64,000 bases of DNA from assembly GCA_010909165.1 (NCBI GenBank), contig VJWM01000011.1, positions 434,001 through 498,000 on the forward strand, given 5' to 3'. The notes beneath the pieces were generated by a model. That model saw nothing but the letters and a program-made list of their open reading frames with translations, searched no databases and had not been told where the DNA came from. Every line of letters begins with the position of its first letter. Position 1 is the first letter of the stretch. The DNA comes from Anthoceros angustus. Its lineage: Eukaryota; Plantae; Anthocerotophyta. Positions 9,170 to 58,059 of the stretch are shown in pieces. A program made the translations under genes and the position numbers.

Positions 9170-9218
9170 GCAGCCCAGCACCACCAGGATTCCTGATACG
9201 CCCTCAGCAGCACCAGCC

Positions 9219-26040: not shown

Positions 26041-26189
26041 CAATTATCTGCAAATTTGGCTTGACTTCCCGCTGTCACAAAGTGCTAGAGTCGCAGACTA
26101 TCATCTGCAACATTGCAAGTCGTTACATGGAAGCTGCCGGTTCCAGCCACCTCACGCGAAGTGTACGCCTGAGTTGATGACATCGGTGA

Positions 26190-26678
26190 GGGCTGGTATC
26201 CACGGAAGTCCATGCATGCGGGGGGCAAGTTGATCTCTCCAAAGCTCCTGCCACGGAGCCCTGTCCTCTCCAAGAAGATACAGCTTACCAGATTCCCTCA
26301 CATCTGTGTGCCTCGACATGGCAGGCAAATGCAAGTTCGGGCACCCTCACCCTGGATATGGGAAAGCAGTCAGGGATCAGAAAACAAGAACATCAGATCC
26401 GTAGCTGGCAGTTGGGACCTGGTGGATGCTTTCATAGTGTTGGGCCGGAGGATGATGTAAACATAAGCTATACTTCAAAAGCCGATATTTGGAGCGCAGG
26501 AGTCATTTTGTATAAAGTTTTAACGGAAAATCGTCCTTATATAAGATATAAATTTGACGCCGAAAAAGAAGAATGGATAACTCAATTGGACCTAAATGAG
26601 CGGCTCAACATCTCACACGAAGTGAAAGATCTGCTACACTCAATGTTATATTTAGAACAAGAGTACAGCAAGTTCTAA
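26190..26678 (+). pseudogene. Protein kinase fragment (CAMK/CDPK-like subdomains IX-XI clear; upstream part weak)
   Basis: YTSKADIWSAGVILYKVL...ISHEVKDLLHSML at 26465-26678. Weaker upstream remnants MHAGGKL and VAGS...VLGRR. Confidence 0.6.
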
Positions 26679-27189
26679 ACCATGCTTGGTTTTGCTCGCT
26701 ATCTTATATATAAAAAGATAGTAATTTTATTATATAAGAATTTTTATTTGTATTATATTTTTAATATAATAATTTTTATTTTAACTTTATTTATAATTTC
26801 ATTAAACCACTCTTCAGTGCCTCTTTCTTGTGAAAAAGTCTTCAAGCCATGCAAGCGACAGTCATGAAATTGATATAGTGAAGCTGAGATTGGAGTATAT
26901 GGCTATGTGTTTAGCTAGTGAGTCCTTTTTTGGTCATTTTCATAGCGTGGCATAATAGCATCGTGACAATTTTTTATTGTATAGTTACGCAGATTACAGT
27001 TACTAAATCGCATGTTAGAATCTTGACGGGTTTGCAAACCCCGATTTCTGCTAGCTCTAAGCGGTGCTCAGCGTGCTTGGGACGACCACACCAAGGGTGT
27101 CGAATGTTTTGAATCATGAGCGAGCAAGGTGAGCGTGGCACAGGCGGAGTGTGAAGATGGCGGCGTGCGAGAAGGAAAATTGGCATTTA

Positions 27190-28000
27190 GGGCTCGAAGC
27201 GGCTATTGTTGAAGTCCCACCTTGCCTGTCCAGAGAACTCCTAGCCTCTGAGGGGCAATGGACACCGTTGCACGAAAGCCATCACACAAGAAAGGGGGGC
27301 GGCGTGGTAGGCTTTAGCACAGCCTTGATGAACTGGAGAAATCCTTGCCCATGGCCCGTGAGTCTCGATGGCAAGGGGATGAAGGCGTGGCCCTTCTTGC
27401 ATGGGCGAGTACTTGTGAACCTTCGTTGTCGCATCTCTCGCCACCCAACTGGAGGGTTGATGATGGCGATGCTTGCGGTGTCCGGGCAAGGTCTTTGACC
27501 ACATCCACAACACGTCCCCCTGGCCGAGAACATGGCGTCGCGGACGGCGTGATGCGTGCAATGCTGCCGGTGGAGGCGAGGGGCTATGGCGGCAGTCTAA
27601 AGAGCGGGCCAAAGGTTGGACCAAACCAGTGGAACCTCATCGCGGTAGAAAAGAAGCCGGTGCGACTCGAAATACCTTGATGCAAGGTCGGGCTAGAAGC
27701 CATGAACTGCTCCTTCCCGAGCAAGAGCGGAGGTGAGCTCGAGCTGGTCAAGGAATGGAGGAGCAAAGCGAGCCGGTGCGTGCCCATCGCTTCTCATGGA
27801 GGGAGGCCAAAGCCCCCGTCCATGAGAGCGAGGAGAATGCGGCATGACCGCCTAGCCTCGAGGATAGGACACCCCTAGCCAATCTTAAGGACAAGCATGC
27901 AGGAAGGCGCCTCCTCGGCCGAGACGAAGGCCTTCAAGATGCGGTAATCCTCAGGGGATTAGGAAATGAGAGGCCTAGATGCGGGTTGAGAGGACCAAGC
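27190..28000 (-). mobile_element. Degenerate CRE-like element, 3' half; a noisy second copy lies at about 30290-31238
   Basis: The minus strand reads TTKVHKYSPMQEG..F.PLAIETHG and MRFHWFGPTFGPLF, paralleling the 10934-11600 element. Confidence 0.75.
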
Positions 28001-28869
28001 TCAAGCGCTGCGCCAAATGCCTTACGGCGCACTCTAAGGGGCTTGTCGCACGAGGTAAACAATTGCATTCATGTGAGCACTTCCTCAATAAACAACCGAG
28101 CAAAACAAATCTAGTATGCAAATATAGGTGCAAACCAATTTGTAACACTAGGAGAGAGTAGCTCGCACGTTGTGGCACAAACACACTCTCCCTACGAGAA
28201 CAACCTGCCGGCATTCGTAGCAGGCATGACCTAGAATCCGTTCGTCTTTACGGTGCTATACAAGACCAATCGCTCCACAAGACTTGTTCTCAGTGGTTGC
28301 CTGTATGCTTGTCACTAGTGAGAAAAGGGCTGGGCAAAAGGCCCTCGGCTGGACGCGCGTGACTGCATAAACTTTCCGAATGTGTGCACCCACCCTACAA
28401 GGATGTTTCTAGAGTATAATATTATACTCTAAAACTAAAAATGTTAAATTAATGAATCAAAGAGGCCTTCTTATGCTGAATTGTTGAATTTGAGTCCAAA
28501 AAGTTATTGAATTTATTAGTTCCAAAAGCAAGTATTGAGATGAGTAGACTTGCACATGAAATGGTAGCAGTCCAAGTATGAAAATATTCACTTTGCAATA
28601 AAGACAATCTGTAGTCCCTACCTATGTCTACATACCACAAACGGGCTGGGTTACAAAACTCAGATCATTTGGAGAGGGCAACGAGGAGAGCCTCGAGTCT
28701 CGACTCGAGAGCTCAACCTAGCGTAGAGGCGGAAGGCAGATCCTTTGCGACGGAAGAGGAAGCCCGAGGGCATCGAGGGGCTTGCGAGGGAGGAGGAGAG
28801 GGTTAGGGTAGGGGGCAGGAGGCGGTGTGAAGGAGGGGTCCCTGAGGGGGGATCCGGGAGGCGGGGGAG

Positions 28870-29846
28870 ATGGAGCAGTTTCTGGAGTGGGAAAGCAAGG
28901 ATGCGGTGCGCATGCCGTGGAACGTGTGGCCCGGCAGCAAGGTGGAGGCGAGCAAGAGCTCGGTGCCCCTGGCTGTGCTGACGACGCCGCTGCGAGATGT
29001 TCCTGGGATGCCCGTCCTGGTGTACGCGCCGCTGCGGTGCAAGAGCTGCCGCTCCCTGCTCAACCCCTACTGTAACGTGGACTTCAACGCCAAGGTGTGG
29101 ATCTGCCCCTTCTGCTACCAGCGCAACCACTTCCCCCCGCAGTACGACTCCATCTCCGAGGTGAACCTCCCGGCGGAGCTCTACCAGCAGTATACGAGCG
29201 TGGAGTATGTGATGTCGGGGGAGGCGGCTGTGGCGCCCGTCTTCCTCTTCGTGCTGGACACTTGCCTGATCGAGGAGGAGCTGGGGTTCTTGAAGCAGGC
29301 GCTGAGCCGGGCCGTGTCCCTGGTGCCGGAGAACGCGCTTGTCGGTCTCATCACCTTCGGGATGCAGGTGCATGTGCACGAATTGGGATTCACCAGTGTC
29401 CAAAAGTCCTACGTCTTCCGGGGTCCAAGGATGTGAGCAGGAGCAGATTCTGGACATGCTGGGGCTGACGGCGCTCGGGGCCGGGCTGCACCAGCATCCG
29501 GGGCCAGGCGAGACGGGATCGCTCCCACCAGCGTGTCTCGCTTCCTGCTGCCCGTGGCGGAGTGCGATCTCACGCTCACCGCCGTGCTGGAGGAGCTGCA
29601 GCGGGATCCTTCCCGTGCAATCCGACAAGCGGGCCTCCCGCTGCACCAGCACTGCGCTGGGAGTGGCTGCCGCGTTGCTAGGGGCCTGCGTGCCGGGGAC
29701 GGGAGCTCGGATCCTGACCTTCGTCGGGGGCCCGTGCACGGAGGGCCTGGGACTATCGTGTCGTCGGATTTGCAGGAGGCGATCAGATCGCACAAGGACA
29801 TTGACAAGGACGCCGTGCCGCACTACCACAAGGCGCTCAAGTTCTA
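28870..29846 (+). CDS. SEC23: SEC23 COPII coat subunit, N-terminal piece (zinc finger and trunk start)
   Basis: [21 protein letters not shown]...[15 protein letters not shown]...[16 protein letters not shown]...FLFVLDTC...[21 protein letters not shown]; no introns; cut at a 9-nt junction. Confidence 0.93.
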
Positions 29847-31163
29847 AACCATGCTTGGTTTTGCTCGCTATCTTATATATAAAAGATAGTAATTTATTAT
29901 ATAAGAACTTTATTTGTATTATATTTTTAATATAATTTTTATTTTAACTTTATTTATAATTTCATTAAACCACTCTTGATTACCTCTTTCTTGTGAAAAG
30001 TCTTCAAGCCATGCAAGCGGCATGAAATTGATATAAAAGATTGGAGTATATGGCTATGTGTTTAGCTAGTGAGTCCTTTTTGGTCATTTTCATAGCGTGG
30101 CATAATAGCATCGGGACAATTTCTTCTTCTATAGTTCATATTATAGTTACTAAATCGCATGTTAGAATCTTGTGGGTTTGCAAACCGATTTGCTCTAGCG
30201 GCTCAGCGTGCTTGGGGCGACCACACCAAGGGTGTCCGAATGTTTTGAATCATGAGCGGAGCAAGGCGTGGCTGAGGCGGAGTGTGAAGATGGCGGCGTG
30301 AGAAGGAAAATTGGCATTTAGGCTCGAAGCGGCTATTGTTGAAGTCCCACCTTGTGTCCACAGGAGAGAACTCCTAGCCCTACTGGGGCAATGGACACCG
30401 CTTGCACAGAAAAACCATCACACAAGAAAGGGCCCTTGTGTTCGGACATAGTAATTGGGCAGGGAATACGACAGCGTGGAAGTTGTGGGCTTGACCGCAG
30501 CACGACACTGGCTGTGTTTTCGAGGTGGTTGCCAGTCCTGGGACGTCCCCTAATCAGGGGTTGCCTATGAAGCAGCAGGTTTTCTTGCAGTTTGTGACTT
30601 ACTATCAGCATCCTGACGGCCAGATGAGGCTTCGCTCGACCACGGTGGCAAGGCCGACTGCGGATGGCCCGTGAGTCTCGATGGCAAGGGGATGAAGGCG
30701 TGGCCCTTCTTGCATGGGCGAGTACTTGTGAACCTTCGTTGTCAGCGCATCTCTCGCCACCAACTGGAGGTTGATGATGGCGATGCTTGCGGTGTCCGGG
30801 CAAGGTATTCACGACCACATCCGCAACACTGGTCCCCGCCAGCCGCCGAACATGGCGGACGGGCGTGATGCGTAATGCATTGCCCTGGAGCGGCGAGGCT
30901 ATGGCGTGAGTCTAAAGCGGGCCAAAGGTTGACCAGTAGGCGAACTTCGCGGTGAAAGCAGTCGGTGCGACTCGAAATACTTTGATGCAAGGTCGGGCTA
31001 GAAGCTGAACTGCTCCTTCCCGAGCAAGAGCGGAGGTGAGCTCGGCTGGTCAAGGAATGGAGGCATCGAGCAGAGCCATGCTGCGTGCCCATCTTCTTCT
31101 CATGGAGGAGGCCGAAGCACCTTGACCGTCAGAGACGAGGAGGAATCTGGCATGACCGCCTAG

Positions 31164-31918
<755 letters not shown>

Positions 31919-33065
31919 TCATTCCCCGGCCGTATGCTCTTGTATGCTTGGTTCCTAACAGGGCAGCAACCTCAAGTGGTCAGCAAATTGGATGCTGCAG
32001 GCGCACTCTGAGGCTTCATGCAGGTAAACAATTGCATTCATGTGAGCACTTCCTCAATAAACAGCAAGGAGCAAAACAAATCTAGTATGCAAATATAGGT
32101 GCAAACCAATTTGTAACACTAGGAGAGTAGCTTGCGTTGTAACAAACACCTCTCCTACTGAACAACACCGCATTCGTGGCGGGCATGACCTAGAATCCGT
32201 TAAGTCTTCGGTGCTATACAAGACCAATCGCTCCACAAGACTTGTTTCTGGTTGCTGTCACTGTGAGAAAGGGGCAAAAGGCCCTCGGGCGCGTGATGCA
32301 TAAACTTTCCGAATGTGTGCACCCACCCAGGATGTTTCTAGAGTATAATATTATACTCTAAAACTAAAAATGTTAAATTAATGAATCAAAGAGGCCTTCT
32401 TATGCTGAATTGTTGAATTTGAGTCCAAAAAGTTATTGAATTTATTAGTTCCAAAAGCAAGTATTGAGATGAGTAGACTTGCACATGAAATGGTAGCAGT
32501 CCAAGTATGAAAATATTCACTTTGCAATAAAGACAATCTGTAGTCCCTACCTATGTCTACATACCACAAACGGGCTGGGTTACAAAACTCAGATCATTTG
32601 GAGAGGGCAACGAGGAGAGCCTCGAGTCTCGACTCGAGAGCTCAACCTAGCGTAGAGGCGGAAGGCAGATCCTTTGCGACGGAAGGAAGCCGAGGGCATC
32701 GAGGGGCTTGCGAGGAGGAGGAGACATTATTTTTACGGATGATGTTAGCTTGCAAGTGTTTGTGGAGCATCTTCAGAAGTTGGCTGTATCATCCTGATCA
32801 TTCCCCGGCCGTATGCTCTTGTATGCTTGGTTCCTAACAGGGCAGCAACCTCAAGTGGTCAGCAAATTGGATGCTGCAGTTTTGTGAAATTTTCTTATCT
32901 ATGTTGTTCAGTCAGGTAGGGGCAGGAGGCGGTGTGAAGGAGGGTCCCTGAGGGGATCCGGGAGGCAGGGAGATGGAGCAGTTTCTGGAGTGGGAAAGCA
33001 AGGATGCGGTGCGCATGCCGTGGAACGTGTGGCCCGGCAGCAAGGTGGAGGCGAGCAAGAGCTCG

Positions 33066-34002
33066 GTGCCCTGGCTGTGTTTTCGAGGTGGTTGCCAGTC
33101 CTGGGACGTCCCCTAATCAGGGGTTGCCTATGAAGCAGCAGGTTTTCTTGCAGTTTGTGACTTACTATCAGCATCCTGACGGCCAGATGAGGCTTCGCTC
33201 GACCACGGTGGCAAGGCCGACTGCGGATGGCCCGTCTGCTGTGGAGGAGCTGGTGTTGGGGTTTGATCAGGAGGCTGCGGCTGTAGTGATGGCCAGGTTG
33301 GCCTCCTTCAAGATGGAGACGGAACCGGAGTTCGACGCCACACGCTGGCTGGATAGAGCTCTCATCCGGTTGTCTTCCAGGTTTGGAGGGTACAGGAAAG
33401 ATGACCCTAGCTCTTTCAGCTTTCCTGACAGGTTCACCATATATCCGCAGTTTATGTTCAACCTCCGCAGATCCCAGTTTGTGCAAGTGTTCAACAACAG
33501 CCCAGACGAGACTGCTTATTTTCGGATGGTGCTCAACAGAGAGAATGTGACCAACTCTTTGGTCATGATCCAGCCATCGCTTATTTCTTACTCCTTCAAC
33601 TCCCCGCCGGAGCCTGCGCTACTGGATGTGGCAGCCATTGCTGCGGACCGTCTGTTGCTCTTGGACTCTTACTTCACCATCGTTGTGTTCCGGGGTATGA
33701 CTATTGCCCAGTGGCGCCAAAGAGGGTTTCAACATCAACCTGAGCATCAGGCTTTTGCTGCCCTCTTGCAAGCACCTCATGATGATGCTACGGCTATTAT
33801 CAAGGACCGTTTCCCTGTGCCTCGTCTGGTGGATTGTGATCAACATACGTCGCAAGCACGGTTTCTTCTTGCCAAGTTGAATCCGTCTGCGACATACAAC
33901 TCAGTCAACGGTCCTGCTCCAGGAGGAGACATTATTTTTACGGATGATGTTAGCTTGCAAGTGTTTGTGGAGCATCTTCAGAAGTTGGCTGTATCATCCT
34001 GA
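33066..34002 (+). CDS. SEC23: SEC23 C-terminal piece (clean copy), fused at its 5' side to a short N-terminal piece
   Basis: [22 protein letters not shown]...[11 protein letters not shown]...[12 protein letters not shown]...[27 protein letters not shown]...LAVSS* with no introns. Confidence 0.95.
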
Positions 34003-36788
34003 TCATTCCCCCGGCCGTATGCTCTTGTATGCTTGGTTCCTAACAGGGCAGCAACCTCAAGTGGTCAGCAAATTGGATGCTGCAGTTTTGTGAAATTTTC
34101 TTATCTATGTTGTTCAGTCAGGTAGGGGGCTAAACTAACAAATGTATTTGAAACTCAGGCGCCACAGCACAGGGCATTAAAGCACAGACTGGGCTGTCTA
34201 TGCTTCTTTCTCTAGCCCTTGTGGTGTTGCAACACTGCAGGTGGAGACTAAGCTTACAATGTCATGGTTGGTTACAGGAGACTGGCAATCGAGTGCTGCA
34301 GCTGTATTTAGTCACGAGCCAGCATATGGAAGTAGGGCTAACAAGAGTCCCAAGAGGTCAACTTCCTTTCTGTAAGAGTTGATGAAAGGTGAAGCAATGT
34401 AAGAGTTGCTCGTCATATTGCGGTTGCAGGCTATTTAGAGAAGCTGTCCTCCTGTATCGATTCTGCTGGAGGCAAGCCCCAAAAGTAGTCGAATCTTAAG
34501 AGATGAGGTATAATTAAGTTGCTACCATCATTGTGATATCAGCTCGAGTCTTGAGGAAGAAAAACAGGTAGCAGCAGTGCCAACTTATGAGGGGTTTGTC
34601 GTCCAGCGATGCAGATATGGGACTGTTAGGGTCACAGAGCTGGAAGGGTTGGCTGGCTGCAGCCCTGACAGCCTGAAAGTGAAATCCATGGACTGAAGAG
34701 TGCTTGGGGCTGCTCAACCCCTACTGTAACGTGGACTTCAACGCCAAGGTGTGGATCTGCCTTCTGCTACCAGCGCAACCACTTCCCCGCAGTACGACTC
34801 CATCTCCGAGGTGAACTGCTCCAAGGACGTCAAGGTGCAGGGGACTATAGGTCCTGCTCTTCCGTGGACAAGAAAGGGCCCTTGTGTTCGGACATAGTAA
34901 TTGGGCAGGGAATACGACAGCGTGGAAGTTGTGGGTGACCGCAGCACGACACTGGCTGTGTTTTCGAGGTGGTTGCCAGTCCTGGGACGTCCCCTAATCA
35001 GGGGTTGCCTATGAAGCAGCAGGTTTTCTTGCAGTTTGTGACTTACTATCAGCATCCTGACGGCCAGATGAGGCTTCGCTCGACCACGGTGGCAAGGCCG
35101 ACTGCGGATGGCCCGTCTGCTGTGGAGGAGCTGGGGTTCGGTGCTATACAAGACCAATCGCTCCACAAGACTTGTTTCTGGTTGCTGTCACTGTGAGAAA
35201 AGGGGCAAAAGGCCCTCGGGCGCGTGATGCATAAACTTTTCCGAATGTGTGCACCCACCCAGGATGTTTCTAGAGTATAATATTATACTCTAAACTAAAA
35301 ATGTTAAATTAATGAATCAAAAGAGGCCTTCTTATGCTGAATTGTTGAATTTGAGTCCAAAAGTTATTGAATTTATTAGTTCCAAAAGCAAGTATTGAGA
35401 TGAGTAGACTTGCACATGAAATGGTAGCAGTCCAAGTATGAAAATATTCACTTTGCAATAAAGACAATCTGTAGTCCCTACCTATGTCTACATACCACAA
35501 ACGGGCTGGGGTTACAAAACTCAGATCATTTGGAGAGGGCAACGAGGAGAGCCTCGAGTCTCGACTCGAGAGCTCAACCTAGCGTAGAGGCGGAAGGCAG
35601 ATCCTTTGCGACGGAAGGAAGCCGAGGGCATCGAGGGGCTTGCGAGGAGGAGGAGACATTATTTTTACGGATGATGTTAGCTTGCAAGTGTTTGTGGAGC
35701 ATCTTCAGAAGTTGGCTGTATCATCCTGATCATTCCCCGGCCGTATGCTCTTGTATGCTTGGTTCCTAACAGGGCAGCAACCTCAAGTGGTCAGCAAATT
35801 GGATGCTGCAGTTTTGTGAAATTTTCTTATCTATGTTGTTCAGTCAGGTAGGGCTAAACTAACAAATGTATTTGAAACTCAGGCGCCACAGCACAGGGCA
35901 TTAAAGCACAGACTGGGCTGTCTATGCTTCTTTCTCTAGCCCTTGTGGTGTTGCAACACTGCAGGTGGAGACTAAGCTTACAATGTCATGGTTGGTTACA
36001 GGAGACTGGCAATCGAGTGCTGCAGCTGTATTTAGTCACGAGCCAGCATATGGAAGTAGGGCTAACAAGAGTCCCAAGAGGTCAACTTCCTTTCTGTAAG
36101 AGTTGATGAAAGGTGAAGCAATGTAAGAGTTGCTCGTCATATTGCGGTTGCAGGCTATTTAGAGAAGCTGTCCTCCTGTATCGATTCTGCTGGAGGCAAG
36201 CCCCAAAAGTAGTCGAATCTTAAGAGATGAGGTATAATTAAGTTGCTACCATCATTGTGATATCAGCTCGAGTCTTGAGGAAGAAAAAAACAGGTAGCAG
36301 CAGTGCGGCCAACTTATGAGGGGTTTGTCGTCCAGCGATGCAGATATGGGACTGTTAGGGTCACAGAGCTGGAAGGGTTGGCTGGCTGCAGCCCTGACAG
36401 CCTGAAAGTGAAATCCATGGACTGAAGAGTGCTTGGGGCTGCTCAACATTTTTCGCTCCCGGTCTCTAGCTCAGTTCATTGTACTCTTACTTGCCTAGCC
36501 TTGTAGGCCTGGCTTGTGTTGCTCCAATTGTCTTTCTGAGCATGTTGCCCTGCCATTATTTACAATCTGTGTACACGACTGCTTTCTGGTTGCTGGTGTG
36601 TGTGGACAATTCTGAGGTCGGTTTTCCAGACCACTGGAGATGGCACAAGCTGGTATGTGCTGTATGCGAAGCCCTGTGTCCTATCTGAGTTGTGTTGCTT
36701 GCTTGATTATGCCCCAGCTAAACCTGTCCAATGCGAACCTCTGCATTGCCGCAGATGTTGTTGTCTGTGGAAACCCTCCCTTGTGCTG

Positions 36789-37576
36789 TTGCCTGATCGA
36801 GGAGGAGCTGGGGTTCTTGAAGCAGGCGCTGAGCCGGGCCGTGTCCCTGGTGCCGGAGAACGCGCTTGTCGGTCTCATCACCTTCGGGATGCAGGTGCAT
36901 GTGCACGAATTGGGATTCACCGAGTGTCCAAAGTCCTACGTCTTCCGGGGGTCCAAGGATGTGAGCAGGGAGCAGATTCTGGACATGCTGGGGCTGACGG
37001 CGCTCGGGGCCGGGCTGCACCAGCATCCGGGGGCCAGGCGAGACGGGATCGCTCCCACCAGCGTGTCTCGCTTCCTGCTGCCCGTGGCGGAGTGCGATCT
37101 CACGCTCACCGCCGTGCTGGAGGAGCTGCAGCGGGATCCCTTCCCCGTGCAATCCGACAAGCGGGCCTCCCGCTGCACCAGCACTGCGCTGGGAGTGGCT
37201 GCCGCGTTGCTAGGGGCCTGCGTGCCGGGGACGGGAGCTCGGATCCTGACCTTCGTCGGGGGCCCGTGCACGGAGGGGCCTGGGACTATCGTGTCGTCGG
37301 ATTTGCAGGAGGCGATCAGATCGCACAAGGACATTGACAAGGACGCCGTGCCGCACTACCACAAGGCGCTCAAGTTCTACGAGGGGCTGGCCAAGCAGCT
37401 GGTGACGCAGGGGCATGTGTTGGATCTGTTCGCCTGCGCGCTGGATCAGGTTGGGGTTGCGGAGATGAAAGTGGCTGTGGAGCGGACCGGGGGTTTGGTG
37501 GTGCTGGCGGAGAGTTTCGGGCATTCTGTGTTCAAGGATTCGTTTGCGAGGGTTTTTGAGGTGGGGGATCACGCCC
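36789..37576 (+). CDS. SEC23: SEC23 middle piece (trunk domain)
   Basis: [14 protein letters not shown]...[16 protein letters not shown]...[16 protein letters not shown]...[14 protein letters not shown]. Confidence 0.93.
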
Positions 37577-37867
37577 TTTCCGGCCTCTGCTACTGTGACC
37601 CTGTGGTGGTGTGTCGGCCAAATTTTGGAAGGAGCAGCCCCTAGCAACGACCCAGATGCCTAGCATATTACAGTTGATGCTGTTGTCAGGTCCGCACACC
37701 AGCGTTCCACGTCCCTTAAGGTGTTGGCGTGCACATGTATTTTGCATTCGCGCACACAGTCGGGGAAGGTGGTGACCTGTCCGGAAGGACCGAGTCTCCC
37801 CCGCCTGTGCGTCACACCTTATTATAGTACACGTGTCGGCGTTCAAAACGGGCAGAAGCTGCACATC

Positions 37868-38176
37868 GAACTGCTCCAAGGACGTCAAGGTGCAGGGGAC
37901 TATAGGTCCCTGCTCTTCCGTGGACAAGAAAGGGCCCTTGTGTTCGGACATAGTAATTGGGCAGGGGAATACGACAGCGTGGAAGTTGTGTGGGCTTGAC
38001 CGCAGCACGACACTGGCTGTGTTTTTCGAGGTGGTTGCCAGTCCTGGGACGTCCCCTAATCAGGGGTTGCCTATGAAGCAGCAGGTTTTCTTGCAGTTTG
38101 TGACTTACTATCAGCATCCTGACGGCCAGATGAGGCTTCGCTCGACCACGGTGGCAAGGCCGACTGCGGATGGCCC
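37868..38176 (+). CDS. SEC23: SEC23 beta-barrel piece (further partial copies at about 30422-30672 and 34807-35135)
   Basis: NCSKDVKVQGTIGPCSSVDKKGPLCSDIVIGQGNTTAWKLCGLDRSTTLAVFFEV. Confidence 0.9.
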
Positions 38177-44997: not shown

Positions 44998-46859
44998 ATG
45001 GGCGGACACGGCCAACGGGCCAAGCTAGTGGTTGGCTTGGATTTCAGGACTACGTTCTCCGGCTTTGCCTACTCTCACACAGACGATCCCGACCGAATCC
45101 ACGCCCTCTACGATTGGCCAGGCCAGCCCCAACCCTACATCAAGACGCAGACCAGCCTCTTCTACGAACCCAATTCGCAGCGCCGGTCCGATGCAGATCC
45201 CGAGTACGTGGTGCGCAAATGGGCGTGGCCCGCCCAGGAGCACTACCTCAGAGTGATGCAGGGCGCCCACCGGGCTCGCCGTGTTGCAGCAACCCGGCCC
45301 ACGCCAGACGACGCATCCTCATCCGCCGCTGTGGACATCGAGCAGGACGTACAGCATCAAGTTGGCTTCTTCGTGAATCGCTTCAAGCTCCATCTGGTGG
45401 ACGGCTCGGCCTCCCCGATTTCGGAGGTCTGGACATTGTCAAGCAGCAGCAGCAACCCAAGCCCAGCCCCAGCCCCAGCCCCGGACAGGGTCAAGACCAA
45501 GTCTGGGAAGGGCAAACCCGGATCGGGCATGTGTTGGCTGCTCTGCGGGAGCGGAAACATGGAGGATGTTGAATCCGAATCCGAATCCGAGCATGTCACT
45601 CATCACCAATTCCCACCCACTGGGGGAAGTGGCAGTGAAAACCAGTTCCGGGAACTGCCCTCTGCAGGAGAAGGCGTTGATAATCAGTTCCTGGCACGGG
45701 ACCGGGACCGGGATCGGGATCGGAATCAAGATCAGGGGCTGGGGGAGCTGGACGGGATTGAGCCGGATGATAGCAAAACCAAGCTGAGGCATGGGTTGGA
45801 CTCGCATCTCCCGCCCGGCGTGACGGTGGAGAGAGCCATCACCGATTTCCTCCACAACATGGCGGATTTCATCCTGCAGCACCTCAGGGCCAGCTACCCG
45901 GCGGCGGGCAACCTCAACATGGCGCATGTGCAGTGGTGCCTCACAGTGCCCGCCATCTGGGACGACAAAGCCAAGCAGAAGATGAGATTTTGCGCGCAGA
46001 GGGCCGGGATGGTGCGGGGCCCGCACTGCCCTCCGGAGCGGGCGCCCATGGCCAGCCCCTTCGAGCTCATCATCGTGCTCGAGTCCGAGGCCGCCTCCAT
46101 CTACTGCGCCAAGAAGTCCAGGCAGCTGGACCTGGCCAGGGAACCCACTTCCTGGTGGCGGACATCGGGGAGGAACTGCCGACATTGTTGTGCACATGAA
46201 GGACAACGACGAGAACGCCACGCTTCAGGTGCGGGAGGTGAAGCACAGCGTGGGCGGGCTCTGCGGAGGGACATTCGTGGACAGGGGTTCATGGACTTCT
46301 TGGACCGCAGAATCGGATGCTTCGCCGACTTCGCCAAGGACCACGCCGGGATGCTGCACAAGATCGTGAAAGAGTGGGAGTCGTCGAAGCGGACGTTCGA
46401 TGGGTCGCTGGATTTTCCGTGGGAGTTCAATCTGCCCACCATTCTGGCCGAACAGTGGCAGAAATACGACGAGGAAATGCTCGCACGGGATCCAGCCCAT
46501 GTCGCCATGAAGGTCTACGACCATATCGAGATCTCGGAGCAGGAGATGAGGGGCATTTTCGACCCCGTGGTGGACCAGATCATCGGGCTCATCGGAGGCC
46601 AGATGTCTCCTCACGTGCAAGTCATCCTCATGGTGGGGGCTTCTCCGGATCTCCTACCTGCTCAGGAGGGTGAGGGAGGCGTTCGAGAGCCGTGTGAGGG
46701 GCCACATCATCTGCCCGTCTGACCCGGGAGTGCCATCTGCCAGGGCGCAGTCTTGCTGGGGATGTCGCAGAATGTGATCGTGTCCAGGGTTGCGCGCAAG
46801 ACTTACGGTATCAGCGAGTGCAGGGACTTCCAGCACGGTGATCCAACTCACTTGCTTGA
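44998..46859 (+). CDS. HSPA12-like (HSP70 superfamily) protein, longest N-terminal copy; other partial copies at about 38390, 40908, 41590, 41910 and 43070
   Basis: KLVVGLDF(G)TTFSGFAY; QWCLTVPAIWDDKAKQKMR..A..AG; IVLESEAAS; frameshift-restored FLVADIGGGTADIVVH; GGLCGGTFVD. These are HSPA12/actin-fold motifs. Intronless, with SP/AP, ES and RD low-complexity inserts. Confidence 0.85.
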
Positions 46860-47944
46860 TTATGCCCCAGCTAAACCTGTCCAATGCGAACCTCTGCATT
46901 GCCGCAGATGTTGTTGTCTGTGGAAACCTCCCTTGTGCTGTTGCCTGATCCTGGTCTGGTGGTCTGTGTCTTCGGCCTTGTGATTACCAAGAACGGAAAT
47001 GTGAGGGAGCTGTGCATCGAAGCCTGACAGCCTCGCGCTGTTGCTCTGTATGGTGCCAGTGATCAAAAGACATCACATTCCATGAAACTGAAGGCTTTGT
47101 CTCTCTCCTTTCCGTCTCGCTGGGTTCCAGCCTTCATTGTCTCTGAATGTTGCACTGTTTAGGGAACTTGAATGACAGTGTGCTTGTTTGTCCCTACATA
47201 CCTACAAGGAATTCCACAGCCATGGATATGGTGGTGGCAAGGTACGGCCATATATTTGCATACATATATGTATGCCGCGATGAGACATTGCTGTCCTCCA
47301 TTGCTTGTCCTTCATCACGGGCCGGTGTTCCCCACACCGGCCCGTGACTATGACCTACCTTGGCAACGCTGAGTCTCTGGCTCGGCGTGTGTGATGCACT
47401 GGCACGCTTCTCCATTCACATGGCTTCTGATCTGTAGCGGGATTTGGAGGCTTCTGTGGTGGTGTGTCGGCCAAATTTTGGAAGGAGCAGCCCTAGCAAC
47501 GACCCAGATGCCTAGCATATTACAGTTGATGCTGTTGTCAGGTCCCGCACACCAGCGTTCCACGTCCCTTAAGGTGTTGGCGTGCACATGTATTTTGCAT
47601 TCGCGCACACAGTCGGGGAAGGTGGTGACCTGTCCGGAAGGACCGAGTCTCCCCCCGTCCCCCCGCCTGTGCGTCACACCTTATTATAGTACACGTGTCG
47701 GCGTTCAAAACGGGCAGAAGCTGCACATCGAACTGCTCATTCCCACCGAAAACAATGAAATGCACTCGCCTTTGAGTGAAGTGGAAGTGAAGTGAGCAAC
47801 TTTTCCATGTCAGTTCTGCCAAAACACATTCCACCATTCTACCCGCAAGGAGATGCATAGCCATGACCCGCGTCCCCAAACCTAAAAATGAGCAGATGCA
47901 CACTCACACCAAGGACCAGGTCTGGGGTTCCTGTCGTCCAAGTG

Positions 47945-49402
47945 GGGCAGCTTGGACTCGCATCTCCCGCCCGGCGTGACGGTGGAGAGAGCCATCACCG
48001 ATTTCCTCCACAACATGGCGGATTTCATCCTGCAGCACCTCAGGGCCAGCTACCCGGCGGCGGGCAACCTCAACATGGCGCATGTGCAGTGGTGCCTCAC
48101 AGTGCCCGCCATCTGGGACGACAAAGCCAAGCAGAAGATGAGATTTTGCGCGCAGAGGGCCGGGATGGTGCGGGGCCCGCACTGCCCTCCGGAGCGGGCG
48201 CCCATGGCCAGCCCCTTCGAGCTCATCATCGTGCTCGAGTCCGAGGCCGCCTCCATCTACTGCGCCAAGAAGTCCAGGCAGCTGGACCTGGCCAGGGAAC
48301 CCACTTCCTGGTGGCGGACATCGGGGAGGAACTGCCGACATTGTTGTGCACATGAAGGACAACGACGAGAACGCCACGCTTCAGGTGCGGGAGGTGAAGC
48401 ACAGCGTGGGCGGGCTCTGCGGAGGGACATTCGTGGACAGGGGTTCATGGACTTCTTGGACCGCAGAATCGGATGCTTCGCCGACTTCGCCAAGGACCAC
48501 GCCGGGATGCTGCACAAGATCGTGAAAGAGTGGGAGTCGTCGAAGCGGACGTTCGATGGGTCGCTGGATTTTCCGTGGGAGTTCAATCTGCCCACCATTC
48601 TGGCCGAACAGTGGCAGAAATACGACGAGGAAATGCTCGCACGGGATCCAGCCCATGTCGCCATGAAGGTCTACGACCATATCGAGATCTCGGAGCAGGA
48701 GATGAGGGGCATTTTCGACCCCGTGGTGGACCAGATCATCGGGCTCATCGGAGGCCAGATGTCTCCTCACGTGCAAGTCATCCTCATGGTGGGGGCTTCT
48801 CCGGATCTCCCTACCTGCTCAGGAGGGTGAGGGAGGCGTTCGAGAGCCGTGTGAGGGGCCACATCATCTGCCCGTCTGACCCCAGTGCCATCTGCCAGGG
48901 CGCAGTCTTGCTGGGGATGTCGCAGAATGTGATCGTGTCCAGGGTTGCGCGCAAGACTTACGGTATCAGCGAGTGCAGGGACTTCCAGCACGGTGATCCA
49001 ACTCACTTGCTTGACGTTGTGAACGGCAGGCGGAAATGCAAGGATGCCTTCTGTGTGTTCGTCCGAATAGGGCAGGAAATCGGCATCGATGAATGCGTCC
49101 AGAAAGAGCGATACCCGGTGTATGCTGGACAGAAGACCGTCCAGCTGCTCCTCTACAGCTCCACCCAAACCAACCCCAGGTACATATCTGACGCCGGCGT
49201 GAAGCTGGAAGGGACTTTGACCATGGACATCTCTGAGGACTTGGGCCGCCTCGACACCAGGAGGTGCATTCTTGTCTCGCTTTACTTCGGAAGGTCTTAC
49301 CTCCAGGTGAAAGCACAGCGGAAGAACTTTGGAAACACATCACAAGTGTTGGAGATGTCGGAGTACATCGACTTCAGTAGCCACGAAGCCACCTCCTCCT
49401 AG
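47945..49402 (+). CDS. HSPA12-like protein, C-terminal copy (others at 49640-51241, 53545-53930 and 54935-56216)
   Basis: IFDPVVDQIIGLI...ILMVGGFSGSPYLLRRVREAF...AICQGAVLLG...RVARKTYGI...FGRSYLQVKAQ...ATSS*. Confidence 0.85.
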
Positions 49403-52400
49403 CTAGGATACTTTACCACATACAATTATTCATGGCGTCCATCTCACATCCTCTCATCATCTGCAGCTTGTGCTTGCTGCGAGCAACAACAGGGCCAGGC
49501 CAGCCAACAGCTCTGGCAGTGTGACACTTACAAATGGCATCCGGCGAGCTTCATCTCGTCAGTCCATGGTGTGACGAGCAAAAACAGGCAGGCGTGAGTG
49601 GAGTGAATGCAACTGACCAGTTTGAGTGGCAGTGGCTCAGTTCCGGGAACTGCCCTCTGCAGGAGAAGGCGTTGATAATCAGTTCCTGGCACGGGACCGG
49701 GACCGGGATCGGGATCGGAATCAAGATCAGGGGCTGGGGGAGCTGGACGGGATTGAGCCGGATGATAGCAAAACCAAGCTGAGGCATGGGTTGGACTCGC
49801 ATCTCCCGCCCGGCGTGACGGTGGAGAGAGCCATCACCGATTTCCTCCACAACATGGCGGATTTCATCCTGCAGCACCTCAGGGCCAGCTACCCGGCGGC
49901 GGGCAACCTCAACATGGCGCATGTGCAGTGGTGCCTCACAGTGCCCGCCATCTGGGACGACAAAGCCAAGCAGAAGATGAGATTTTGCGCGCAGAGGGCC
50001 GGGATGGTGCGGGGCCCGCACTGCCCTCCGGAGCGGGCGCCCATGGCCAGCCCCTTCGAGCTCATCATCGTGCTCGAGTCCGAGGCCGCCTCCATCTACT
50101 GCGCCAAGAAGTCCAGGCAGCTGGACCTGGCCAGGGAACCCACTTCCTGGTGGCGGACATCGGGGAGGAACTGCCGACATTGTTGTGCACATGAAGGACA
50201 ACGACGAGAACGCCACGCTTCAGGTGCGGGAGGTGAAGCACAGCGTGGGCGGGCTCTGCGGAGGGACATTCGTGGACAGGGGTTCATGGACTTCTTGGAC
50301 CGCAGAATCGGATGCTTCGCCGACTTCGCCAAGGACCACGCCGGGATGCTGCACAAGATCGTGAAAGAGTGGGAGTCGTCGAAGCGGACGTTCGATGGGT
50401 CGCTGGATTTTCCGTGGGAGTTCAATCTGCCCACCATTCTGGCCGAACAGTGGCAGAAATACGACGAGGAAATGCTCGCACGGGATCCAGCCCATGTCGC
50501 CATGAAGGTCTACGACCATATCGAGATCTCGGAGCAGGAGATGAGGGGCATTTTCGACCCCGTGGTGGACCAGATCATCGGGCTCATCGGAGGCCAGATG
50601 TCTCCTCACGTGCAAGTCATCCTCATGGTGGGGGCTTCTCCGGATCTCCCTACCTGCTCAGGAGGGTGAGGGAGGCGTTCGAGAGCCGTGTGAGGGGCCA
50701 CATCATCTGCCCGTCTGACCCCAGTGCCATCTGCCAGGGCGCAGTCTTGCTGGGGATGTCGCAGAATGTGATCGTGTCCAGGGTTGCGCGCAAGACTTAC
50801 GGTATCAGCGAGTGCAGGGACTTCCAGCACGGTGATCCAACTCACTTGCTTGACGTTGTGAACGGCAGGCGGAAATGCAAGGATGCCTTCTGTGTGTTCG
50901 TCCGAATAGGGCAGGAAATCGGCATCGATGAATGCGTCCAGAAAGAGCGATACCCGGTGTATGCTGGACAGAAGACCGTCCAGCTGCTCCTCTACAGCTC
51001 CACCCAAACCAACCCCAGGTACATATCTGACGCCGGCGTGAAGCTGGAAGGGACTTTGACCATGGACATCTCTGAGGACTTGGGCCGCCTCGACACCAGG
51101 AGGTGCATTCTTGTCTCGCTTTACTTCGGAAGGTCTTACCTCCAGGTGAAAGCACAGCGGAAGAACTTTGGAAACACATCACAAGTGTTGGAGATGTCGG
51201 AGTACATCGACTTCAGTAGCCACGAAGCCACCTCCTCCTAGCTAGGTTCCATGCCTGCTTTTCACGGTTCCTTGACAGCAGCAGCGTCCACGCCCTTTCC
51301 GGCCTCTGCTACTGTGACCCTGTGGTGGTGTGTCGGCCAAATTTTGGAAGGAGCAGCCCCTAGCAACGACCCAGATGCCTAGCATATTACAGTTGATGCT
51401 GTTGTCAGGTCCCGCACACCAGCGTTCCACGTCCCTTAAGGTGTTGGCGTGCACATGTATTTTGCATTCGCGCACACAGTCGGGGAAGGTGGTGACCTGT
51501 CCGGAAGGACCGAGTCTCCCCGTCCCCCGCCTGTGCGTCACACCTTATTATAGTACACGTGTCGGCGTTCAAAACGGGCAGAAGCTGCACATCGAACTGC
51601 TCATTCCCACCGAAAACAATGAAATGCACTCGCCTTTGAGTGAAGTGGAAGTGAAGTGAGCAACTTTTCCATGTCAGTTCTGCCAAAACACATTCCACCA
51701 TTCTACCCGCAAGGAGATGCATAGCCATGACCCGCGTCCCCAAACCTAAAAAATGAGCAGATGCACACTCACACCAAGGACCAGGTCTGGGGGTTCCTGT
51801 CGTCCAAGTGGGGCAGCTTGGACTCGGTCCTCGTCTATGGGGATGGCAGGCCTACGCCGGGGATGGCCCTGGCCTTCTCATGCTCACTCCAAGTGAACGA
51901 GTGGACGTGCGAGCAACAACAGGGCCAGGCCAGCCAACAGCTCTGGCAGTGTGACACTTACAAATGGCATCCGGCGAGCTTCATCTCGTCAGTCCATGGT
52001 GTGACGAGCAAAAACAGGCAGGCGTGAGTGGAGTGAATGCAACTGACCAGTTTGAGTGGCAGTTGTGCTTGCTGCGAGCAAACTTGCAGTCATACCGACA
52101 TGACATCAATCGATTCCATTTGTTGTGACAAATTTTGTAAACTTTGACACATATGCCAGTGCAGCCTAGTTGGGTTCCAGCCTTCATTGTCTCTGAATGT
52201 TGCACTGTTTAGGGAACTTGAATGACAGTGTGCTTGTTTGTCCCTACATACCTACAAGGAATTCCACAGCCATGGATATGGTGGTGGCAAGGTACAACCA
52301 TATATTTGCATACATATGTATGCATGCCGCGATGAGACATTGCTGTCCTCCATTGCTTGTCCTTCATCACGGGCCGGTGTTCCCCACACCGGCCCGTGAC

Positions 52401-55400
52401 TATGACCTACACGCGCGCTGAGTCTCTGGCTCGGCGTGTGATGCACTGGCACGCTTCTCCATTCACATGGCTTCTGATCTGTAGCGGGATTTGGAGGCTT
52501 CTGTGGTGGGGATGGAGGAGGTTGTGTAGTGCTGTACAGGAATCCCGTTGAAGGTGGATCCGAGGCTGTTACCAGGGTTTGAATTTCCCTATTCGTGATC
52601 GCGGAGTGTCACGGGTTTGGGACACAAGCCGCAAGCTGGTTTAGGAGCTGTGACAAGAGAATTGATGTGGAAGGAATCGCGGACAGGAATCTGCTTGCTG
52701 AATCGCGGACAGGAATCTGCATCTGAATGTTCCTGGAATAACAAAGCTCAGAGATGTGAGGGATGTCGGGATAAGCAATGCCAACTGAGCTCACGTGTTG
52801 AGTGCTACTTAGAAGTACGCACATTCTTCAGTATCACATCCTCATCATGAGTGAGCATCTTGTGATTCTTACCGTCATTCCTCATTATCACATACCTCAC
52901 CATGAGTGAGCACCTTGTGATTATGAGTCATAGTGTTCGTTCTTGTGGAAGTCCAGCAAGCATTCTTCACCGCATAGCTCGATGGATATTGCCTCAAGCC
53001 AAGCAGTTTCCTCAGTGCAGAACTTTTCATGTTCTTTTTCCTTGCCATTGTGGATATAAGTATACCTCATGAAAAGTTCTTTTTCCTTGCCATTGTGGAT
53101 ATAAGTATACCTCTTTCTGGCCATGAACACTTTTAGCTCACATGAGACGGAGTCTGAGCAGCAGCAACGGGTAGTAGAACGGCTCGGCTCGGCGGTGCAC
53201 ATGTAGGCAGGAATGCTATTTAAAATTCCTAGGTGGAGCCTTTGAGATTTATACATGAACAATCAATAGACAAGAATTTGGCGGTGTTGGCACTATTATT
53301 ATTGAGGGTTGCCGAGGTGAGGTGGGCTACAACCCCTTTTGGGGTCTCTTGGGGTTCATCATACTGAGCTAAGACTTTGTATGTCGGAGTAAGTGAGGAC
53401 TCTTTGTCTCCGATCCGATGCCTCCTTGTCCTTGACAATCCCAGTGTCATGATTTGTTCTCTCTCTATGCGATTTCTTCTCTCTGCAATGGAGCGGTCCA
53501 TACCTTCAGGATCAGAACACTCCATCCGGTATGTGCGTTAAGGGTGAAAACCAGTTCCGGGAACTGCCCTCTGCAGGAGAAGGCGTTGATAATCAGTTCC
53601 TGGCACGGGACCGGGACCGGATCGGGATCGGAATCAAGATCAGGGGCTGGGGAGCTGGACGGGATTGAGCCGGATGATAGCAAAACCAAGCTGAGGCATG
53701 GGTTGGACTCGCATCTCCCGCCCGGCGTGAAGCTGGAAGGGACTTTGACCATGGACATCTCTGAGGACTTGGGCCGCCTCGACACCAGGAGGTGCATTCT
53801 TGTCTCGCTTTACTTCGGAAGGTCTTACCTCCAGGTGAAAGCACAGCGGAAGAACTTTGGAAACACATCACAAGTGTTGGAGATGTCGGAGTACATCGAC
53901 TTCAGTAGCCACGAAGCCACCTCCTCCTAGCTAGGATACTTTACCACATACAATTATTCATGGCGTCCATCTCACATCCTCTCATCATCTGCAGCTTGTG
54001 CTTGCTGCGAGCAAACTTGCAGTCATACCGACATGACATCAATCGATTCCATTTGTTGTGACAAATTTTGTAAACTTTGACACATATGCCAGTGCAGCCT
54101 AGTTGGGTTCCAGCCTTCATTGTCTCTGAATGTTGCACTGTTTAGGGGAACTTGAATGACAGTGTGCTTGTTTGTCCCTACATACCTACAAGGAATTCCA
54201 CAGCCATGGATATGGTGGTGGCAAGGTACAACCATATATTTGCATACATATATGTATGCATGCCGCGATGAGACATTGCTGTCCTCCATTGCTTGTCCTT
54301 CATCACGGGCCGGTGTTCCCCACACCGGCCCGTGACTATGACCTACACGCGCGCTGAGTCTCTGGCTCGGCGTGTGATGCACTGGCACGCTTCTCCATTC
54401 ACATGGCTTCTGATCTGTAGCGGGATTTGGAGGCTTCTGTGGTGGGGATGGAGGAGGTTGTGTAGTGCTGTACAGGAATCCCGTTGAAGGTGGATCCGAG
54501 GCTGTTACCAGGGTTTGAATTTCCCTATTCGTGATCGCGGAGTGTCACGGGTTTGGGACACAAGCCGCAAGCTGGTTTAGGAGCTGTGACAAGAGAATTG
54601 ATGTGGAAGGAATCGCGGACAGGAATCTGCTTGCTGAATCGCGGACAGGAATCTGCATCTGAATGTTCCTGGGAATAACAAAGCTCAGAGATGTGAGGGG
54701 ATGTCGGGATAAGCAATGCCAACTGAGCTCACGTGTTGAGTGCTACTTAGAAGTACGCACATTCTTCAGTATCACATCCTCATCATGAGTGAGCATCTTG
54801 TGATTCTTACCGTCATTCCTCATTATCACATACCTCACCATGAGTGAGCACCTTGTGATTATGAGTCATAGTGTTCGTTCTTGTGGAAGTCCAGCAAGCA
54901 TTCTTCACCGCATAGCTCGATGGATATTGCCTCAAGCCAAGCAGAAGATGAGATTTTGCGCGCAGAGGGCCGGGATGGTGCGGGGCCCGCACTGCCCTCC
55001 GGAGCGGGCGCCCATGGCCAGCCCCTTCGAGCTCATCATCGTGCTCGAGTCCGAGGCCGCCTCCATCTACTGCGCCAAGAAGTCCAGGCAGCTGGACCTG
55101 GCCAGGGAACCCACTTCCTGGTGGCGGACATCGGGGAGGAACTGCCGACATTGTTGTGCACATGAAGGACAACGACGAGAACGCCACGCTTCAGGTGCGG
55201 GAGGTGAAGCACAGCGTGGGCGGGCTCTGCGGAGGGACATTCGTGGACAGGGGTTCATGGACTTCTTGGACCGCAGAATCGGATGCTTCGCCGACTTCGC
55301 CAAGGACCACGCCGGGATGCTGCACAAGATCGTGAAAGAGTGGGAGTCGTCGAAGCGGACGTTCGATGGGTCGCTGGATTTTCCGTGGGAGTTCAATCTG

Positions 55401-58059
55401 CCCACCATTCTGGCCGAACAGTGGCAGAAATACGACGAGGAAATGCTCGCACGGGATCCAGCCCATGTCGCCATGAAGGTCTACGACCATATCGAGATCT
55501 CGGAGCAGGAGATGAGGGGCATTTTCGACCCCGTGGTGGACCAGATCATCGGGCTCATCGGAGGCCAGATGTCTCCTCACGTGCAAGTCATCCTCATGGT
55601 GGGGGGCTTCTCCGGATCTCCCTACCTGCTCAGGAGGGTGAGGGAGGCGTTCGAGAGCCGTGTGAGGGGCCACATCATCTGCCCGTCTGACCCCGGGAGT
55701 GCCATCTGCCAGGGCGCAGTCTTGCTGGGGATGTCGCAGAATGTGATCGTGTCCAGGGTTGCGCGCAAGACTTACGGTATCAGCGAGTGCAGGGACTTCC
55801 AGCACGGTGATCCAACTCACTTGCTTGACGTTGTGAACGGCAGGCGGAAATGCAAGGATGCCTTCTGTGTGTTCGTCCGAATAGGGCAGGAAATCGGCAT
55901 CGATGAATGCGTCCAGAAAGAGCGATACCCGGTGTATGCTGGACAGAAGACCGTCCAGCTGCTCCTCTACAGCTCCACCCAAACCAACCCCAGGTACATA
56001 TCTGACGCCGGCGTGAAGCTGGAAGGGACTTTGACCATGGACATCTCTGAGGACTTGGGCCGCCTCGACACCAGGAGGTGCATTCTTGTCTCGCTTTACT
56101 TCGGAAGGTCTTACCTCCAGGTGAAAGCACAGCGGAAGAACTTTGGAAACACATCACAAGTGTTGGAGATGTCGGAGTACATCGACTTCAGTAGCCACGA
56201 AGCCACCTCCTCCTAGCTAGGATACTTTACCACATACAATTATTCATGGCGTCCATCTCACATCCTCTCATCATCTGCAGCTTGTGCTTGCTGCGAGCAA
56301 ACTTGCAGTCATACCGACATGACATCAATCGATTCCATCTTGGGAGGTTGTCTCTTTCTTAATTCACGACTTACTTCAAAGCAGTAAGTCTCCACATCCT
56401 TCAAAGGGGCCTCTCGAGTCTCCCGCCCTTCAAAGGGGCCTCTCGTCTCTCCGCCTTCAAAGGGCCCTCTCAGCAATCCTTCACAAAGAGCGGACGAGTA
56501 ACGCTTCTTCCTCTTCCTCCATATTGCAGGCCATTTGTTGTGACAAATTTTGTAAACTTTGACACATATGCCAGTGCAGCCTAGTTGGGTTCCAGCCTTC
56601 ATTGTCTCTGAATGTTGCACTGTTTAGGGGAACTTGAATGACAGTGTGCTTGTTTGTCCCTACATACCTACAAGGAATTCCACAGCCATGGATATGGTGG
56701 TGGCAAGGTACGGCCATATATTTGCATACATATATGTATGCCGCGATGAGACATTGCTGTCCTCCATTGCTTGTCCTTCATCACGGGCCGGTGTTCCCCA
56801 CACCGGCCCGTGACTATGACCTACCTTGGCAACGCTGAGTCTCTGGCTCGGCGTGTGTGATGCACTGGCACGCTTCTCCATTCACATGGCTTCTGATCTG
56901 TAGCGGGATTTGGAGGCTTCTGTGGTGGGGGATGGAGGAGGTTGTGTAGTGCTGTACGGGGGAATCCCGTTGAAGGTGGATCCGAGGCTGTTACCAGGGT
57001 TTGAATTTCCCTATTCGTGATCGCGGAGTGTCACGGGTTTGGGACACAAGCCGCAAGCTGGTTTAGGAGCTGTGACAAGAGAATTGATGTGGAAGGAATC
57101 GCGGACAGGAATCTGCTTGCTGAATCGCGGACAGGAATCTGCATCTGAATGTTCCTGGGAATAACAAAGCTCAGAGATGTGAGGGGATGTCGGGATAAGC
57201 AATGCCAACTGAGCTCACGTGTTGAGTGCTACTTAGAAGTACGCACATTCTTCAGTATCACATCCCTCATCATGAGTGAGCATCTTGTGATTCTTACCGT
57301 CATTCCTCATTATCACATACCTCACCATGAGTGAGCACCTTGTGATTATGAGTCATAGTGTTCGTTCTTGTGGAAGTCCAGCAAGCATTCTTCACCGCAT
57401 AGCTCGATGGATATTGCCTCAAGCCAAGCAGTTTCCTCAGTGCAGAACTTTTCATGTTCTTTTTCCTTGCCATTGTGGATATAAGTATACCTCATGAAAA
57501 GTTCTTTTTCCTTGCCATTGTGGATATAAGTATACCTCTTTCTGGCCATGAACACTTTTAGCTCACATGAGACGAAGTACAGAGAGCAACGGCGATGGTA
57601 GAACGGCTCGGCTCGGTGCACATGTAGGCAACAGAATGCTATTTAAAATTCCTAGGTGGAGCACTGGAGATTTATGCCTGCATATGAACAATCAATAGAC
57701 AAGAATTTGGCAGGTGTTGGCACTATTATTGAGGGTTGCCAGTAGTGAGGTGGGCTACAACCCCTCTAGGCGGGGCCTTTTGGCTGGTCTCTTGGGGTTC
57801 ATCATACGGAGCTAAGACTTTGTATGTCGAGTAAGGGCTGGGGACTCTTTGTCTCCGATCCCGATGCCTCCTTGTCCTTGACAATCCCAGGCTGGTGTCC
57901 GCAGTTTGTTCTCTCTATGCGATTTCTTCTCTCTGCAATGGAGCGGTCCATACCTTCTGATCAAGAACACTCTAGGCAAGCGTGGGTGAAAACCCGGCTG
58001 ACACGTGCATAAGGACTTCTACCAGACTACTTGGGCTGTCTAAGTAAGTCTTGCGACCT

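Follow-up and report, generated by a model that had tools for sequence, protein, structure and literature searches.

Short stretches of matched sequence at rearrangement joins are known from several systems. Replication-based rearrangements carry microhomologies that are mostly 2–6 nt long and graded in length, and inverted pieces are common among them. Chimeras arising from displacement amplification are typically inverted. In the pointer-scrambled genes of ciliates, which belong to a germline/soma system, the pointers vary widely in length and flank each segment pair once, and inverted segments occur. Rad51/RecA-family recombinases are reported to capture microhomologies with a threshold of 8 nt, and we know of no case in which their in vitro microhomology sampling makes joins. 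Here we analyzed a 64,000-nt stretch of Anthoceros angustus (assembly GCA_010909165.1, contig VJWM01000011.1, positions 434,001–498,000 of the forward strand; hereafter the window), which is nuclear DNA of a land plant and contains a mosaic region of 31 kb assembled from short-range, same-strand copies of a single locus. Sequence-internal statistics and one related contig indicate that this region is very probably a mis-built consensus and not a genomic structure.

The mosaic resembles the products of fork stalling and template switching (FoSTeS), microhomology-mediated break-induced replication (MMBIR) and serial slippage in its short-range templated pieces, in the return to the original template and in the microhomology at its joins. 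It differs from them, however, by a hard 9-nt step, by the lack of any dependence on stability and by the absence of inversion. As in the ciliate genes, short direct repeats border segments that need reordering to give an intact gene, but here the segments overlap, repeat up to six times and are never inverted, and the host is a land plant. The threshold-like minimum length recalls Rad51/RecA capture, whereas at this locus none of the 679 available 8-nt pairs was used. A likeness of another kind is offered by CONSENT (PMC7804095), a long-read corrector and polisher which employs k = 9 both in chaining and in connecting solid anchors via a local oriented graph. With a design of this type the mosaic shares the exact 9-letter minimum, the restriction to oriented sequences, the replacement of weak stretches by clean paths that rejoin the backbone, and an excess word length as predicted by chance.

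Architecture of the mosaic

Self-BLAST of the window returned 115 direct and no inverted high-scoring segment pairs (HSPs), and word multiplicity (k = 25) rose to 2–6 over the interval 28–58 kb. When all aligned positions were merged by union-find, about 10.5 kb of first-seen sequence remained. To describe the path through this sequence we used a template, U, which was built by joining stretches with recurring adjacency; the order of the encoded protein was used for the Sec23 gene alone. U comprises 11631 nt with flanks and has a core of 10.3 kb. Window positions 26000–58599 mapped on U as 46 direct segments, connected by jumps both forward and backward, some of which landed in template not traversed before. 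The mosaic itself extends over window positions 26669–57957 and forms a walk of 46 co-linear same-strand segments, whose source is about 10.3 kb of unique sequence. The segments have a median length of a few hundred nucleotides, overlap extensively and recur up to six times, none of them inverted. These results bear out the original prediction that some 10–11 kb of unique sequence is walked back and forth, always in direct orientation and with forward jumps into unseen sequence; only the end of the mosaic, placed there at 57990, had to be moved to 57957. The walk can be divided into the following parts:

26669–29846, + strand: first pass, U 670–3847, adjoining the left flank; noisy; ends on a 9-nt word; covers the upstream region together with the 5′ portion of Sec23 (residues 18–355 at 28900–29883)
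29838–37379, + strand: second pass over the same backbone (U 670–3847), interrupted by five detours into U 4336–6480
38168–57957, + strand: remainder of the walk, with about 33 segments that loop over U 4038–11004
56531–57957, + strand: last pass, adjoining the right flank, which begins at 57958; noisy
56339–56530, + strand: flank detour of 192 nt, about 89% identical to a right-flank element (58864–59088; also 61506–61733)

The 9-nt word on which the first pass ends (29838–29846) recurs at 26669–26677. All five detours of the second pass re-enter the backbone 12–111 nt downstream of their point of exit, with 54, 111, 12, 78 and 95 nt being skipped. Between 38168 and 57957 the jumps span about 0.7–3.5 kb each, with one of 5.9 kb; their sign alternates between backward and forward within a band of about 3.3 kb sliding along the template. 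Two cycles of 321 nt are found within this part (41263–41905). The flank detour carries 9-nt words at both entry and exit and returns 4 nt upstream of its departure.

The right flank has repeats of its own. Between 58550 and 63450, direct repeats lie about 2.6 kb apart (58738–59209 with 61384–61860, 94.6% identity; 60552–60850 with 63147–63444, 99.7%), and a further pair consists of 58553–58597 and 61270–61314. One of these repeats supplied the detour at 56339–56530; with two copies only, join words are not measurable here. A 38-nt unit is repeated 45 nt apart at 53031–53113 and at 57456–57538. Since both copies of this template block contain it, the unit is probably a true small tandem repeat belonging to the template itself. 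Rfam and tRNA scans found no family and no tRNA in the window.

Joins, words and copy differences

Joins were catalogued from pairs of HSPs ending and beginning on one stretch. Their overlap was recorded from –10 to +40 nt, with no lower limit imposed. This gave 46 junction events, corresponding to 38 distinct joins, and the resulting histogram has its peak at exactly 9 nt, a smaller number of overlaps measuring 10 or 11 nt. Exact shared words were found at 32 of the 38 joins and measured 9 nt in 24 cases, 10 nt in five and 11 nt in three. The count of 24:6:3 given in the original prediction was thus reproduced almost exactly. One additional join (34813–34816) has 4 shared nt as read and would have 9 only if a 2-nt loss in the noisy first pass is assumed. 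At 39221|39222 and 39530|39531, each occurring three to four times, one parent is never visible, so that these two joins are not measurable. A representative 9-nt join word lies at 41585–41593 (+ strand) and is used again at 41906–41914; the partner join has a 10-nt word at 41479–41488 and 41800–41809.

Deviating overlaps were followed up individually. Joins with indels at a distance of up to 40 nt defeat the automatic ungapped word caller and were resolved by eye. Most of the shorter apparent overlaps arose from an indel beside the word, while overlaps of 19 and 28–29 nt represented two adjoining words. For instance, at 32918|32919 the same exact 10-mer is present in both parents (28807 and 34121), with a single G missing from the recombinant copy. 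The join at 49625–49633 shows a clean 9-nt word followed by a few wrong bases. At 53508–53552 the right flank is entered for 36 noisy nt, and the exit again occurs on a 9-nt word.

To relate the words used to those on offer, we counted all maximal exact repeat pairs in the U core; words in the flanks were not counted as used.

7-nt words: 2384 direct pairs, 0 used
8-nt words: 679 direct pairs, 0 used
9-nt words: 163 direct pairs, 21 used
10-nt words: 48 direct pairs, 5 used
11-nt words: 13 direct pairs, 3 used
12–14-nt words: 8 direct pairs, 0 used

The rate of use at 9, 10 and 11 nt (13%, 10% and 23%, respectively) is flat above the minimum, and it is zero below. If 8-nt words had been used at the rate seen for words of at least 9 nt, about 94 such joins would be predicted (probability of finding none, ~1e-44); with a rate ten times lower the probability is still only ~8e-5. 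The template offers 163, 48 and 13 pairs of 9, 10 and 11 nt, in line with the roughly 4-fold fall-off per base that had been predicted, and the 24:5:3 joins show that word lengths beyond the minimum match chance availability. Strand was discriminated just as sharply: none of the 226 inverted pairs of at least 9 nt was used (P ~3e-15). The stability of the words, by contrast, did not matter. Of the 305 unused 8-nt pairs that lie in the active distance range, 260 exceed the weakest used 9-mer in their nearest-neighbour stacking sum and 53 exceed even the median used 9-mer. The GC content of used words (56%) is close to that of the available 9-nt words (58%). Letters are thus counted regardless of their strength, which fits exact word matching in software and not annealing.

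Use also depended on distance. No pair closer than 0.5 kb was used (0/38), followed by 2/20 and 7/41 in the next classes, 13/34 at 2–3 kb and 6/14 at 3–3.5 kb. Beyond 3.5 kb the counts were 0/31, 1/33 and 0/21. The jump range hence stops sharply near 3.3 kb, the sole exception being the jump of 5.9 kb.

The copies differ from one another mainly by indels. We counted 270 gap events versus 98 mismatches, and 144 of the 270 gaps were located in homopolymers. Over about 1.4 kb, six copies show just three to four differing sites. The passes attached to the flanks (26669–29837 and 56531–57957), on the other hand, differ by 6–17% from the other copies. In block 28053–28799 the first-pass copy is 92–93% identical to two later copies, which share 99.2% with each other. 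Likewise, the last pass is 93.8% identical to 52116–53507, versus 99.5% for the pair 52063–53006 and 53996–54944. These differences are best described as residual long-read error that was unevenly polished, not as divergence.

Elsewhere in the window, a tandem duplication at 6203–8546 (unit of 1.17 kb, 98.1% identity, 6 mismatches, 10 gaps) was noted in a GC-rich stretch that has a TPX2-domain open reading frame (ORF) on its minus strand. Start of the unit, junction and end all carry one exact 10-nt word, and the duplication may represent one backward jump of the same artefact.

The template and its genes

In order, U consists of window positions 26000–29826, 37360–38156, 33214–34698, 36428–36778 and 38985–39221, a short gap, and then 40422–41468, 43630–44598, 46532–46839, 48995–49466, 53995–54924 and 57412–58599. 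Two genes are complete and ordered on this template, namely Sec23 (U 2901–4061 and 4337–5410) and an Hsp70-12-like gene (U 7204–7602 and 8034–9437), the order of the latter following from adjacency alone. An intact copy of either gene was not found in the window as assembled, and no single segment carries either of them whole. The true locus is almost certainly about 10.3 kb long, and its two genes are ordinary ones: Sec23, which is nearly free of introns, and the Hsp70-12-like gene.

ORFs in the region exhibited the Sec23/Sec24 trunk, beta-sandwich, helical and gelsolin domains of Pfam, and full-length relatives of about 770 residues assign the Sec23/Sec24-domain gene to Sec23. A profile search yielded only a relative, a Sec23 protein of 746 aa (P0330) with about 79% identity to the Sec23 of the window. 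Its source is a Logan contig from a related plant, L001 (SRR33208241), of 10.8 kb and 49% GC. In L001, Sec23 occupies 6942–9182 as a single ORF of 746 codons without introns and in the same order as in U. The following features were used in the comparison:

36789–38176, + strand: longest native Sec23 stretch, residues 145–521 (tblastn)
33071–34718, + strand: native 3′ Sec23 stretch with downstream spacer, residues 477–777; ORF 33004–34002
36439–36448, + strand: native adjacency, whose word is also used by the recombinant joins 34710–34718 and 38650–38658
37594–37867, + strand: insert of 275–295 nt within Sec23, where L001 has 36 coding nt (8072–8108)
44998–46722, + strand: Hsp70-12-like (actin-like ATPase) ORF of 574 aa, cut short by the join at 46851

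The trunk-domain ORF of the longest native stretch (36640–37644) matched Pfam Sec23_trunk with an E value of 1e-61. Stretch 33071–34718 contains the helical, gelsolin and beta-sandwich domains, was recovered by tblastn as a single HSP and is co-linear with L001. Outside the gene, L001 9622–9740 aligns over the native adjacency at 36439–36448, but not over the joins at 34710–34718 or 38650–38658. The match in order and adjacency thus supports our choice of native adjacencies, while agreement with L001 alone does not show that the mosaic is absent from A. angustus. About 0.5–0.7 kb downstream of the Sec23 stop codon, a 67-nt element is 84% conserved between the two sequences (window 36432–36498, L001 9649–9714); it had no Rfam match at E values up to 0.1.

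The insert block of about 275 nt recurs at 39246–39521, 40141–40412, 47478–47729 and 51313–51593. Together with the 24 nt preceding it, which are Sec23 coding sequence, it also fills the interval 39221–39531 as a 307-nt block in all four traversals. The block at 37594–37867 is either a species-specific Sec23 intron or a repeated detour.

As for the second gene, a word search with the 574-aa ORF identified relatives among HSP70-12A-like proteins of ferns, Selaginella and mosses (E values down to 1e-77). Further partial copies of the Hsp70-12-like gene are located at 47952–49486, 49638–51246 and 54934–56338. In word searches with the Sec23 and Hsp70-12-like ORFs the best identities were 70% and 39%, respectively, and no sequence of the same species was among the matches. 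To the left of the mosaic, an intact ORF of 1052 codons (22882–26040) encodes a PPR protein of the PLS type that carries an E motif; an exact look-up of this protein gave no match. The ORF has internal 312-nt repeats at 23737–25190, and the sequence quality just left of the mosaic looks good.

Origin of the mosaic

For the observed 9-nt step, strand rule, range limit, detours and co-linear template, we infer a graph or anchor mechanism that would have acted at one step of the assembly pipeline. A correction, consensus, polishing or gap-filling step would encode oriented long reads as exact 9-letter words. The output would be threaded through this word representation, so that any 9-mer shared within about 3.3 kb could let the thread switch places. 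Many of these passes might represent attempts at bridging a weak stretch between two backbone anchors, which would explain why detours return almost to their point of exit. The outcome would be a same-strand walk of 31 kb in which the locus appears about three times over. Noise would then have persisted in the flank-attached copies, likely since reads used for later polishing aligned with the cleaner copies in the interior. An artefact of this kind, a strand-oriented walk on words of nine in correction or polishing, had been the preferred explanation in the original prediction, and it is supported by the length step, the blindness to stability, the strand rule, the range cut-off, the detours and the indel-dominated differences between copies.

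Several observations weigh against this explanation. The claim that shared words are never shorter than 9 nt goes slightly too far: it holds for the 32 joins of 9–11 nt, but three joins are practically wordless, namely 32000|32001 (1 nt), 35134|35135 (0–2 nt) and 51244|51245 (2 nt). The noisy first pass is a parent of the former two, whereas 51244|51245 joins clean copies and has to be taken as a genuine exception. At about 97% of branch words the walk keeps to its course, and it takes a wrong branch at only about 3%, which means that it is guided and not memoryless and that a plain word-9 graph is a misfit. Moreover, when the skipped stretch is taken out, the shortest paths through the 9-mer graph of U do not yield the observed detours. 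CONSENT works in 500-nt windows, as opposed to the jumps of up to 3.3 kb (and one of 5.9 kb) seen here, and the low proportion of wrong branches and the failure of shortest-path search to reproduce the detours set the mosaic apart from a design of this type. Finally, replication-based template switching would also be compatible with the range limit and with the way in which detours rejoin the backbone.

Candidate programs and representations were examined individually. CONSENT itself was rejected as the source; its k = 9 and its linking of anchors agree with the mosaic, but its 500-nt window is at odds with it, and we retain the program as proof that such designs exist. NextDenovo was discarded as well; according to its paper it uses a K = 8 flank word set with 3-mer scoring and not a path graph. 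Homopolymer-compressed words do not apply, since the words used measure 9 nt in raw letters, runs included. A plain breadth-first word-9 graph fails as the whole mechanism, given that its shortest paths need many more hops and that one bridge is pathless.

Real serial replication slippage or template switching of the FoSTeS/MMBIR type, on one strand and at short microhomologies, would account for the uniform orientation of the copies, for jumps of at most about 3.5 kb, for detours that resemble templated insertions going back to the original template and, in the case of a very young event, for copies nearly free of substitutions. We nevertheless consider it very unlikely. Its joins should not obey a hard floor that is blind to stability, with 0 of 679 8-nt words used versus 13% of those of 9 nt and 260 unused 8-mers outstacking the weakest used 9-mer. 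Use should rise with length and not stay flat over 9–11 nt, and inverted templated pieces should be found, given the 226 inverted words on offer. Furthermore, about 38 joins in one locus would wreck both genes, and the noise is of the sequencing type and concentrated in particular copies. A pointer-like scrambling of real DNA or capture by Rad51-type recombinases at 8–9 nt, which the original prediction had put forward as the biological option, is not supported: a capture rule of 8 nt predicts that 8-nt words serve as joins, and none did.

The comparison of stabilities likewise bears on the possibility that a chimeric molecule formed in vitro, by polymerase jumping or by ligation during library preparation, was read as one long read and then assembled. 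Polymerase jumping does make same-strand chimeras at short homologies, and the noisy copies attached to the flanks suggest that the region was built from very little data. Annealing, however, predicts lengths that are graded and dependent on stability, whereas the joins observed make use of AT-rich 9-mers but never of GC-rich 8-mers. Inverted pieces, which typify displacement-amplification chimeras, are lacking, and a systematic cause would have to be invoked for some 46 jumps within a single molecule; such an origin therefore appears highly improbable to us. Still less credence can be given to ordinary segmental or tandem duplications blurred by sequencing error, with the 9-nt rule as an effect of join detection. 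The window does contain other repeats (6203–8546 and 58.5–63.4 kb), and end-trimming by BLAST can bias apparent overlaps. But 9 nt dominates even though the overlap measure had no lower limit between –10 and +40 nt, shorter values were traced to indels beside the word or to two close words, and a set of 46 segments, whose median length is a few hundred nucleotides, is not duplication-like.

There is, in our estimate, only a slight probability that the mosaic is a real and very young product of same-strand copy choice that needs at least nine matched bases of any composition within about 3.3 kb. If this were true, it would reveal a length-counting mechanism of template switching, which to our knowledge is not known from any organism. 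With a mis-built consensus as the far more probable origin, the practical value lies in the approach: word use normalised to availability separates joins made by software from joins made by annealing, and no reads are needed for it. A step at a fixed length, independence of stability and the lack of inverted use serve as diagnostic checks. For A. angustus, the consequence is that Sec23 and the Hsp70-12-like gene both lack an intact assembled copy, even though the 10.3-kb template is recoverable from the window. The finding thus matters as quality control of the assembly and most likely not as biology.

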